This document shows, one piece after another, positions 30,386 through 33,598 of a DNA stretch of 64,000 bases. Both the position numbers and the translations under genes were made by a program. Origin of the DNA: Dendrobates tinctorius (lineage: Eukaryota); assembly GCF_039654945.1 (NCBI RefSeq), contig NW_027361917.1, positions 9,052,001 to 9,116,000 of the forward strand. Direction: 5' to 3'. Every line of letters begins with the position of its first letter. Within the stretch, counting starts at the first letter, position 1. Below the pieces are notes generated by a model. The model had not been told where the DNA came from. It searched no databases and worked only from the letters and a program-made list of their open reading frames with translations.

Positions 30386-31672
30386 AGGTGCAATTCAGAT
30401 AGACGCCCTGCCTGCCAGTCAGTTTTCATGTTATTTTTTCTAAGGGGGAGGATGTAGGAACTTATGTATACTATACCAGGCTGAATCTAGTACCAGGAAT
30501 ACAATGCTAAGCTTTATTTGTTTTCAGATTTACAAAGCTAAACAATATCTCTGACAATTGCTCTGAAAGGAGAATAATAGGCTGCCCAGGGGAATGGGAA
30601 GCGGTGGCGGAGAATGGAAAGAGTGAACTTCCTGACAATTGCATCTGCACAATAGGTGATTGATTAGGTAATGTGAAACGCAGGCAGCTTTTTAAAAAAT
30701 CTTTTGGCCACTTTTTTTCCAATCCATAAAACGTAAACTTTTCACGTATCCTACCTGTATTATATGGTATATTTCTACACCAGTATAACAGCACGGGAAT
30801 AAAGGCACAGGAATAGATTCCAAGGATCAGGCTTCTCCTTTTCACTCTCTGTAGATACAGGTCGTTTATGTCTGTACAAATCTTATAGGACTTGGCCCAG
30901 GTCCCGAAGAAAAAGTGGAACAGATAAGTAAAATGTTTTCCAGAAGATGAATTTTCAATTAATAGTTTAAAGTCAATCTGTCACCAGATTATACAGTAAA
31001 AGCTGCATACATTACTAAATAGATATCTTAAACTCAATGAGACTGCTGTACTTACTTTGAAAATCCATATTAGAATGGCTGTATAATCCTTCGAGCATTG
31101 TCTGTATGGAGTCTTACAAAACGGGCAAAGTGCCATTGTAGAAAATATGTAAATTACCGCTCTCATATGGAATTGTAAGGTAGTTACCTCACTCTCCTAA
31201 GGAGCACTTGTGAGATAATTTATTTCCTTCTGAAATTTTCATACTTTTTCTCAATTTGTCTGTAAATTAATTTCTAGATTTATTCCTGGTCATGTTACAA
31301 GGCTCATTAAAAAAAAAATTGGACATTGACAAGTCAGCTATCTGCTATGGAGCATTGCCTGTAAAACTGCATTCTCAGCTGGGAATTTAAGGAGAAGCAG
31401 TACTTCCCTCTCTATGGGTACATTGGCACTCTTTATCAGTGTTCCTTGACATACCGTGGGGAAAAAAGTGCATTATTTAGTCAGCCACCAATTGTGCACG
31501 TTCTCCCACTTAAAAACATGAGAGAGGCCTGTAAATGACATCATAGGTAGACCACAACTATGAGAGTCAAAATGAGAAAACAAATCCAGAAAATCATCTT
31601 GTCTGATTTGGCAAGATTTATTTTGCAAATTATGGTGGGAAATAAGTATTTGGTCCTTAAAAAAAGTTTGTC

Positions 31673-32696
31673 TCAATATTTTGTTATATATCCTTTGTTG
31701 GCAATGACAGAGGTCAAACGTTTTCTGTAAGTCTTCACAAGGTTGGTACACACTGTTGGTGGTAGGTTGGCCCATTCTTCCATGCAGATCTCCTCTAGAG
31801 CAGTGATGTTTTGGGCCTGACGCTGGGCAACACGGACTTTCAAATCCCTCCAAAGGTTTTCTATGGGGTTGAGATCTGGAGACTGTAAAGGCCACTCCAG
31901 GACCTTCATATGCTTCTTACAAGGCCACTCCTTCATTGCCCTGGCTGTGTGCTGGGGATCATTATCATGGTGAAAGACCCATCCACATTTTATCTTCAAT
32001 GCCCTTGCTGATGGAAGGAGGTTTGCACTCTAAATTTCACGATACATGGCCCCTTTCATTCTTTTAATGTACATGGATCAATCGTCCTGGTCCCTTTGCA
32101 GAGAAACAGCCCCAAAGCATGATGTTGCCACCCCCATGCTTCACAGTAGGTATGATGTTCTTTGGATGCAACTCAGCATTCTGTCTCCTCCAAACACGAC
32201 GAGTTTTGTTTCTACCAAACAGTTATACTTTAGTTTCATCAGACCATATGATATTCTCCCAATACGCTTCTGGATAATGCAAATGCTCTCTAGCAAACTT
32301 TAGACGGACCCAGACATGTACTGGCTTAAGCAGGGGGACACGTCTGGCACTGCAGGATTTGATTCCCAGGCGGCATAGTGTGTTACTGATGGTAGACTTT
32401 GTCATGGTGGTCCCAGCTTCATGCAGGTTATTCACTAGGTCCCCCTGTGTGGTTCTGGGATTTTTGCTCACTGTTCTTGTGATCAATTTAACCCCATGTG
32501 GGGAGATCTTGCGTGGAGCTCCAGATCGAGGGAGATTATCAGTGGTCTTGTATGCCTTCCATTTTCTTACTATGGCTCCCACAGTTTATTTCATCACACC
32601 AAGCTGCTTCTCTATTGCAGATTCAATCTTCACAGCCAGGTGCAGGGCTACAATTTTGTTTCTGGTATCCTTTGATAGCTCTCTGGTCTTCATCAT
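31673..32696 (-). pseudogene. Tc1 transposase pseudogene
   Basis: [32 protein letters not shown] and [15 protein letters not shown] motifs in broken frames. Confidence 0.93.
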
Positions 32697-33030
32697 AGTG
32701 GAGTTTGCAGTGTGACTGTTTGAGGTTGTGGACAGGTGTATTTTATACTGATAACAACTTCAATCAGGTGCCATTACTGCAGGGTACACGTAATGAGTGG
32801 AGGACAGAGGAGCCTCTAAAAGAAGCTATGAGAGCTAGAAATCTTGCATGTTTTTAGGTGACCAAATACTTATTGTCCACCATAATTTGAAAACTAAATC
32901 TTGCCAAATCAGACAATGTGATTTTCTGGATTGGTTTTCTCATTTTGACTCTCATAGTTGTGATCTACCTATGATGTCAATTAAAGGCCTCATGCTTTTA
33001 AGTGGGAGAACTTGCACAATTGGTGGCTGA

Positions 33031-33376
33031 TTAGGACTGCTCAGATCCTTCCTTATCTGATTTGTGGACAGCATAATGACATCTGTGCCCTCATGTAATC
33101 ATTGTGAAGCCGCCAAATATCCAATCCTCTTAAAAGTTAATTTTGAGTCTCTCATCACCTCGACAATATTAAATGCAGCCCAGCTGATGTCATAGCCCAG
33201 CATTTGCAAATAGGTTAGCTTTCAAACGGCATTAGCTTTCACAGCAATGTTGTCTTGCTTAAGTTCTTGTTGGATCTCATCGATACAGTGGGAGATATAT
33301 TTTGCCTCATCCTCTTTGTGATTGCAGATTCTCCTGACCAGATCCTGCAGGTTCTTGTTGAACATGCGGTCAATAC
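33031..33376 (-). pseudogene. AP3D1: Intronless AP-3 complex subunit delta fragment A (approx. codons 9-124)
   Basis: The minus strand translates IDRMFNKNLQDLVRRICNHKEDEAKYISHCIDEIQQELKQDNIAVKANAV*KLTYLQMLGYDISWAAFNIVEVMRDSKLTFKRIGYLAASQ*LHEGTDVIMLSTNQIRKDLSSPNQ, which matches the vertebrate AP3D1 N-terminus with two stops. Confidence 0.93.
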
Positions 33377-33598
33377 CACATGGTTGCTATGGGCGGGAAA
33401 TAGAGTTAGCTGAGTTGCAGCCATTTTTGCTTCTGTGTCCGGTGACAAGAGTCTGGAGCGGCTCGATCCCGTGCACAGACATGGCGGTCCATATGGTGAA
33501 GGGAAGTATTGACTTCATGTTCGACAAGAACCTGCAGGATCTGGTCAGGGGAATCCACAATCACAAAGTTAATGCGGCAAAATATATCTCCCACTGTA
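33377..33598 (+). pseudogene. AP3D1: AP3D1 fragment B (putative 5'UTR plus first ~39 codons)
   Basis: ATG at 33481 gives MAVHMVKGSIDFMFDKNLQDLVRGIHNHKVNAAKYISHC, versus AP3D1 MALKMVKGSIDRMFDKNLQDLVRGIRNHKEDEAKYISQC. Confidence 0.9.

Follow-up and report, generated by a model that had tools for sequence, protein, structure and literature searches.

We describe a degenerate Tc1-like DNA transposon in a 64,000-nucleotide stretch of the Dendrobates tinctorius genome (contig NW_027361917.1, positions 9,052,001 to 9,116,000 of the forward strand; hereafter the window), whose right terminus has been replaced by 568 bp that, judged from its sequence, was copied from the spliced message of AP3D1, the gene for AP-3 delta. 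The replacement is made of two overlapping pieces from the 5' part of that message, placed head to head in opposite orientation, and a third piece of the same gene is fused to a second Tc1 terminus 600 bp away. We propose, as a reading that we regard as about an even bet, that breaks at the Tc1 ends were sealed by copying spliced AP3D1 mRNA or cDNA, with DNA 3' ends serving as primers. The product is a dead, single-copy chimera, probably a one-off repair patch and not a new mobile element. The features at the transposon and its patch, in window positions, are:

31452 to 31453, no strand: TA target dinucleotide bordering the Tc1-like element on the left, visible in the sequence itself and carried with 0 differences by a same-species DNA contig (31061-31503)
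31454 to 33033, minus strand: degenerate Tc1-like DNA transposon of 1580 bp, from its repeat arms and Pfam matches on broken open reading frames (ORFs)
33027 to 33030, no strand: junction J1, microhomology CTGA between the Tc1 repeat and antisense AP3D1 codons 124-125, from an alignment of both repeats
33031 to 33376, minus strand: AP3D1 fragment A, codons 10-125, spliced, with two stop codons, from translation and tblastn (E down to 1e-47)
33377 to 33598, plus strand: AP3D1 fragment B, about 104 nt resembling 5' untranslated region (5'UTR) plus codons 1-39, with ATG at 33481, from translation and coordinate mapping
33284 to 33598, plus strand: A/B inverted repeat, arms 33284-33376 and 33506-33598 (89% complementary), loop 129 nt
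33590 to 33598, plus strand: junction J3, CCCACTGTA, which is AP3D1 codons Ser-His-Cys and also the Tc1 terminal 7 nt plus TA; AP3D1 homology stops here

The transposon has the TA target, the terminal inverted repeats starting with CAGTG and the DDE transposase with a Tc3-type helix-turn-helix that mark the Tc1-like members of Tc1/mariner. Its repeat arms (31481-31663 and 32851-33030) are 90% alike in self-comparison. A complete left repeat, with a private 5-nt insertion near 31469, contrasts with the right repeat, which ends in ...GGTGGCTGA at 33030, with the terminal 20-23 nt missing when gauged against the element's own left end and against the terminus at 34184. The minus-strand transposase survives as broken pieces with matches above the Pfam cut-offs to HTH_Tnp_Tc3_2 (E=4e-19) and DDE_3 (E=4e-10). 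With its gene broken and its right terminus gone, the element reads as a dead jumping gene, belonging to a family that stands at a depth of about 1e5 in DNA runs. A piece of a second, more distant Tc1-like family, with 72-77% identity to this element, lies at 6303-7063.

Fragments A and B adjoin the right Tc1 repeat directly, and A matches AP-3 delta proteins with tblastn E-values of 1e-41 to 1e-47. The two fragments overlap by 93 nt of the message (89% alike in self-comparison), and their inner joint at 33376|33377 shows no microhomology. An earlier sequence-only reading of this DNA had described a tip of about 17 bp exchanged for about 560 bp of AP3D1; sequence, tblastn and translation agree on the replacement of the Tc1 end by AP3D1 sequence, with the lost tip measured at 20-23 nt and, as a correction, the 568 bp resolved into two opposite pieces with a 93-nt overlap. 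A search of the window with five AP-3 delta proteins found no AP3D1 sequence beyond codon 125, and a full AP3D1 retrocopy or the true gene within the window was rejected on that result. Neither polyA or polyT at the AP3D1 fragment ends nor a LINE-type (long interspersed nuclear element) target duplication was found in the window, in keeping with that reading's description of a patch holding only the 5' part of the mRNA.

The chimeric structure is not an assembly artefact, because independent contigs carry its junctions. Three same-species DNA contigs (31061-31503, 33242-33545 and 33527-34201) have 0 differences from the window and match the junctions of left flank and Tc1, of A and B, and of B and its flank, and in an independent run (X1) a single contig of 1208 nt spans 33001-34208 in one piece.

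The second Tc1/AP3D1 junction lies across a stretch of host DNA from the first, and its AP3D1 fragment has itself been split by a retrotransposon:

33599 to 34181, no strand: flank F, the host sequence that separates the two Tc1 ends; apart from a small repeat at about 33875-33991 it is single-copy
34182 to 34222, plus strand: TA (34182-34183) and an orphan Tc1 terminus of 39 nt (34184-34222) with its inner side to the right, from sequence and repeat families
34218 to 34222, no strand: junction J2, microhomology TTGTG between Tc1 repeat positions 35-39 and antisense AP3D1 codon ~115, from alignment
34223 to 34239, minus strand: 3' part of AP3D1 fragment C, bounded by the target duplication GACATC of the Gypsy element, from repeat family and sequence
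34240 to 40057, minus strand: Ty3/Gypsy chromovirus of 5.8 kb inside fragment C, from self-BLAST and Pfam
40058 to 40294, minus strand: AP3D1 fragment C, 5' part, codons ~30-110, from BLAST and a PDB match

What the sequence-only reading had taken for an intact Tc1 copy at 34184 is thus the 39-nt terminus fused to fragment C. As a whole, C runs from about codon 115 down to about codon 30 without a stop codon, is 94% identical to A, and matches residues 32-108 of AP-3 delta-1 in the PDB (E=1e-44) as well as Pfam Adaptin_N. The Gypsy element inside it has long terminal repeats (LTRs) of about 860 bp (34240-35098 and 39182-40057; Kimura two-parameter distance, K2P, 0.054), the target duplication GACATC, and gag, protease, reverse transcriptase, RNase H, integrase and chromo domains spread over four broken ORFs; its insertion is later than fragment C, which it splits. 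When A and C were polarised by conserved residues, about 9 codons were derived in A and about 3-4 in C, a difference that is not significant. No second copy of flank F was found in the window, and the left flank, F and the sequence to the right of C have nothing in common with each other. The small repeat inside F (33875-33991) is dispersed and reaches 200-900x depth in DNA runs from each of the three species, and two related species hold 33617-33935 of F at about 95% identity.

All three AP3D1 fragments lack introns, as judged by intron positions from a rodent AP3D1 locus and other vertebrates; cluster searches at 90% and 50% for a frog AP3D1 gave mammal, bird and invertebrate sequences first. 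The rodent locus has canonical GT..AG introns after codons 32, 64, 91 and 118, and short ORF fragments from bird, mammal and fish start with LQMLGYD (codon 65) and, past TTNQIRK (codon 118), continue into the intron. Fragment A is continuous through 32|33, 64|65, 91|92 and 118|119 (at 33305, 33209, 33128 and 33047), B through the exon 1|2 joint (32|33, at 33576|33577), and C through 64|65 and 91|92 (at 40189 and 40108); the junction in A, GAGGATGAG|GCAAAATAT, is nearly a base-for-base match to the rodent exon 1|2 joint. Genomic contigs from the same species and two relatives are alike only from 33377 to 33545-33568 (exon 1), and are unlike the window for hundreds of bases on either side, as promoter and intron would be; in the relatives' contigs the likeness to B stops at 33568, near the end of exon 1. 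Because the fragments cross conserved intron positions without introns, and because the genomic contigs are alike only over exon 1, A, B and C evidently derive from a processed AP3D1 message, and the parent gene lies elsewhere, which upholds the earlier description of the insert as intronless and cDNA-like. As intronless copies of a spliced mRNA, the fragments resemble a processed pseudogene; 3' anchoring with polyA and target duplications is absent within the window. We also considered C as a genomic exon, given that its homology ends near the exon 1|2 junction, and rejected this, as C continues uninterrupted across the intron positions that follow codons 64 and 91. On the immediate 5' side of the exon 1|2 junction (33569-33576 and 40286-40294), B and C read TAATG and A reads GGATG. 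Either AP3D1 of this frog reads Asp-Asn-Glu here, like invertebrate AP-3 delta, or B and C share history.

The joins between Tc1 and AP3D1 sequence retain microhomologies longer than chance would supply, including those that the sequence-only reading had noticed at the inner and outer junctions of the patch. At J1 the overlap is CTGA exactly, or CTGAyTA with one mismatch, such that ...GGCTGA-3' is extended by TTAGGACTG...; at J2, ...CCAATTGTG-3' is extended by GTCAGCATAATG...; and at J3, on the minus strand, ...CATGTACAGTGGG-3' is extended by AGATATATTTTGCC.... The chance of sharing at least 4 nt at a random join, as at J1, is about 0.016, of at least 5 nt, as at J2, about 0.005, and of the 9 nt of TA plus CAGTGGG at J3, or more, 3e-5. 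The J3 9-mer CCCACTGTA is also the sole plus-strand copy in the 64 kb, and under models without a Tc1 end the chance that a 480-nt fragment would stop exactly on its only match to TA and the Tc1 tip is about 1/480. Each AP3D1 fragment (3/3, chance 1/8) is antisense to the strand whose 3' end is on the Tc1 or flank side, an arrangement that would result from DNA 3' ends pairing with AP3D1 mRNA and being extended in the direction of its 5' end, and that is compatible with the RNA- or cDNA-templated repair suggested earlier. The J3 9-mer is better read as microhomology at which a repair strand annealed than as an end used by transposase, so that the suggestion that AP3D1 had supplied a working CCCACTG terminus was not supported.

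We build the proposed mechanism on the observed anatomy, spliced origin, microhomologies, orientations, single-copy status and junctions in independent reads. At the right end of the Tc1 element, the plus-strand 3' end ...GGCTGA would have annealed to AP3D1 mRNA at UCAG, and its extension as antisense cDNA, running from codon 125 back to codon 10, would have produced fragment A. On the other side of the break, the minus strand of F with TA and a few Tc1 terminal bases would have annealed at CCCACUGUA; copying from there as far as the message's 5' end would have produced fragment B, after which the two cDNA ends would have been joined blunt and head to head at 33376|33377. The copying may have been done by the reverse transcriptase of a retroelement or by a repair polymerase that accepts RNA as template, and fragment C may have arisen by the same route, or as a copy of A, at the second Tc1 end 600 bp off. 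Two-ended priming at a double-strand break would explain why there is no polyA, no target duplication and only the 5' part of the gene. The start of B is the exact point at which likeness to the parent-gene genomic contigs starts in three genomes, and 33377 may be the AP3D1 transcription start. We infer a break made by transposase or during gap repair after excision, an RNA template rather than free cDNA, the copying enzyme and the order of events.

In a same-species DNA run, depth over A and B was 6-15, with 8-15 across 33056-33640, compared with 5.7-7 for single-copy flank and about 1e5 for Tc1, and the surplus over A and B fits fragment C and the parent gene. Single-copy depth means that there is no amplified family and no other retrocopy able to act as a DNA template. 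A family of Tc1/AP3D1 chimeras, which the sequence-only reading had named as something to look for, was therefore rejected, with no further copies in the window. K2P distances are 0.117 between the A/B arms, 0.099 between the Tc1 repeats, 0.063 between A and C and 0.054 between the Gypsy LTRs. Several of the arm differences fall in one CGC codon, now TGC in A and CAC in B, a pattern of CpG decay. Contigs of two relatives stop aligning exactly at 31453, with 39-41 more letters of their own beyond it, hold F only as 33617-33935, and over A fit parent exons or C; their orthologous flanks differ by 4-9%.

Several points weigh against repair from a spliced message. The case for a transposase-made break is indirect, being the position of the junctions at Tc1 termini, and 33377 is a putative transcription start. 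It is awkward that one gene should have patched two separate Tc1 ends, unless A was the template for C or a single event accounts for both; a history common to both Tc1/AP3D1 junctions was considered and found no support, as their breakpoints differ. The 93-nt overlap of the two cDNAs exceeds that usual in twin priming (median 12 nt; PMC12016303). The intron positions are those of rodent and other vertebrates and not of this frog. The divergence of the A/B arms (11.7%, K2P) is greater than the 4-9% of the cross-species flanks, yet the relatives show no clear A/B orthologue in contigs that are short and from which conserved genes were filtered; CpG decay on the one hand, and the filtering or shortness of the contigs on the other, may explain this mismatch.

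A non-long-terminal-repeat retrotransposon lies at 26703-30387, 1 kb upstream of the Tc1 element, with long open frames of 331 aa and 585 aa, the latter with RVT_1, a strongly negative GC skew and, at about 30365-30387, an (ATT)n tail. One alternative history is a LINE-made AP3D1 processed pseudogene with a twin-priming 5' inversion, later truncated by Tc1 insertions and microhomology-mediated deletions. The minus strand of such a pseudogene would have read inverted codons 39 to 5'UTR and then codons 10 onward to polyA, the part 3' of codon 125 and the Tc1 tip would have been lost, and C would have been added later as an incomplete duplicate made locally. In favour of this history, the LINE and the Gypsy element place long-ORF retroelements near the patch, and A and B, head to head around the 5' end of the message, have exactly the topology of twin priming, which 13% of processed pseudogene insertions in humans show (PMC12016303). 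Later deletions are plausible, since every part is old (K2P 0.05-0.12). Though the topology is well matched, we hold this history to be unlikely. The 93-nt overlap far exceeds the usual 4-17 nt (PMC12016303), and polyA, target duplication and the 3' part of the gene are all absent from the window. Three independent coincidences would be needed, namely a deletion ending 20 nt inside the Tc1 repeat, a second Tc1 terminus on the same gene, and an inverted piece ending on a 9-mer that equals TA and the Tc1 tip. The (ATT)n tail of the neighbouring LINE is of the CR1/L2 type, and CR1/L2-type LINEs rarely copy cellular mRNAs. A DNA-level rearrangement of an older AP3D1 retro-fragment beside a once-complete Tc1, for instance an inversion of 33034-34222 with breaks in the right repeat and in AP3D1, or a variant by fork stalling and template switching or microhomology-mediated break-induced replication (FoSTeS/MMBIR), has a different attraction: flipping 33034-34222 rebuilds a complete right repeat with its TA, by rejoining the orphan 39-nt terminus with an overlap of only 16 nt. 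Microhomology is present at both of the new junctions, J1 and J2, and the inverted repeats formed by the Tc1 ends and the A/B arms are fragile. The un-inverted state, however, would be a zigzag of antisense, sense and antisense AP3D1 pieces that itself needs explanation, the J3 9-mer would be left as pure coincidence, a simple two-break event would not give a 16-nt duplication, and F without a second copy shows that this was not an inverted duplication; we judge such a rearrangement to be quite improbable.

The interpretation favoured by the sequence-only reading was a Pack-type Tc1. In its full form this model has a mobilisable element at 31454-33596, with transposase cutting at the CCCACTG supplied by AP3D1 and with the 34184 element as a copy transposed by local hopping and later deleted. 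TA is present on both sides of this composite, a second chimera of Tc1 terminus and AP3D1 lies 600 bp off in the same orientation, and Tc1-family elements tend toward local hopping. Yet the right-hand TA belongs to AP3D1 codons TGT-ATC, the nearest part of the right repeat that transposase would bind is about 565 bp from the pseudo-end, and this copy's transposase gene is broken. A and B are located beyond the truncated right repeat rather than between two repeats, and the next Tc1 piece, at 34184, is a left-type end facing away, so that no right-end repeat follows them. Nor are the junctions common to the two chimeras, as would be expected of a mobilised family (repeat position 24 and codon 125 in one, position 39 and codon 115 in the other); C stops at codon 30, the flanks are unrelated, and the depth of A and B is single-copy. 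We therefore regard a mobile Pack-type element as very improbable.

Repair of a break from the spliced message resembles known systems in part. Class 2 templated sequence insertions are reverse-transcribed patches, sometimes of several spliced exons, that seal a break with microhomology and resemble endonuclease-independent LINE-1 insertion (Onozawa and Aplan, PMC5110952). As in these, the patch described here is a short, heritable, single-copy stretch of distant transcribed sequence that can hold spliced exons, with no polyA or target duplication and with junction microhomology (4, 5 and 9 nt). Unlike in these, the presumed break is at a frog Tc1 terminus, and both ends were apparently primed on one message, giving two inverted, overlapping pieces. 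Pack-TIRs, in which host sequence is joined to a terminal-inverted-repeat transposon, arise in animals by gap filling with microhomology, as reported from 100 animal genomes including the western clawed frog (Tan et al. 2021, PMC8277862), where one retrogene case, ARF6 in MER20, was left as possible retroposition. The likeness extends to template switching at microhomology, single-copy status and transcription with the flanking transposon; in Pack-TIRs, however, the filler lies between two repeats and is usually a nearby genomic copy, whereas here spliced filler replaces one repeat tip, outside the body of the element. L1 twin priming (Ostertag and Kazazian 2001, per PMC12016303) likewise, in L1 and in processed pseudogenes, joins two opposite cDNAs of one RNA head to head, the inverted piece holding the 5' part of the RNA and the two cDNAs overlapping where they meet, but the locus lacks a polyA-primed arm, a target duplication and an endonuclease site, its two pieces share 93 nt where the median is 12 nt, and its outer ends are Tc1. 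The locus also recalls interrupted repair of transposon-made gaps, in being an element truncated at one end whose foreign filler was attached through short homologies. Such abortive gap repair, with filler DNA, is known at excision sites of P element, Ac/Ds and mariner (cited in PMC8277862). In those cases the filler is normally genomic and both termini are usually kept, in contrast to the spliced filler and the single terminus reduced to a shared 7-9 nt seen here.

The inverted arrangement of A and B gives any transcript of the locus a long double-stranded stem. RNA folding of 33270-33610 yields a hairpin with a 93-bp stem (minimum free energy -193.6 kcal/mol, z = -14.7). The X1 contig has 15 differences from the genome, and among the 10 that are listed, 10/10 are A>G on the plus strand. 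That at 33477 is also found in the DNA runs and is a shared variant; the nine private to X1, at 33309-33340 and 33526-33553, all fall within the arms, mostly in A-U pairs and none after G. The sample of X1 differs from that of the DNA runs, and the hairpin is probably transcribed and ADAR hyper-edited on the plus-strand transcript, a reading that is only probable because X1 is not on record as RNA. We tentatively put forward, as distinctly less certain than the repair itself, that when a transposon terminus broke in the germline, each of the two DNA ends served as a primer for reverse transcription of one and the same host mRNA, and that the resulting hairpin locus is transcribed and ADAR-edited and could feed small RNAs against AP3D1.

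Repair of breaks by cDNA patches or with RNA templates is already established in yeast, in cell culture and in rare human polymorphisms, and few clear germline cases in which both junctions can be read are known outside mammals. The present locus retains the priming microhomologies, a run to the putative 5' end of the message and a blunt inner joint, and could serve as a worked example of a DNA transposon end gaining spliced host sequence without LINE hallmarks. If true, two-ended priming would make it a natural vertebrate fossil of RNA-templated break repair, in effect "twin priming without LINE endonuclease". It also cautions that a chimera of transposon and gene need not be a mobile "Pack" element: copy number and shared junctions are the test, and both fail here. 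As a by-product, such repairs can seed new double-stranded RNA loci, in this case an inverted repeat of AP3D1 exons that is apparently transcribed and edited.

Two observations from the surrounding DNA may be added. In both relatives, one contig of single-copy depth joins ...31047-like sequence to 34173-like sequence on the opposite strand, and it is probably another copy of the repeat at 30950-31183. Toward the far end of the window, 52938-63942 is a tandem duplication with a 5.5-kb unit and 99.5% identity that reaches the window end.

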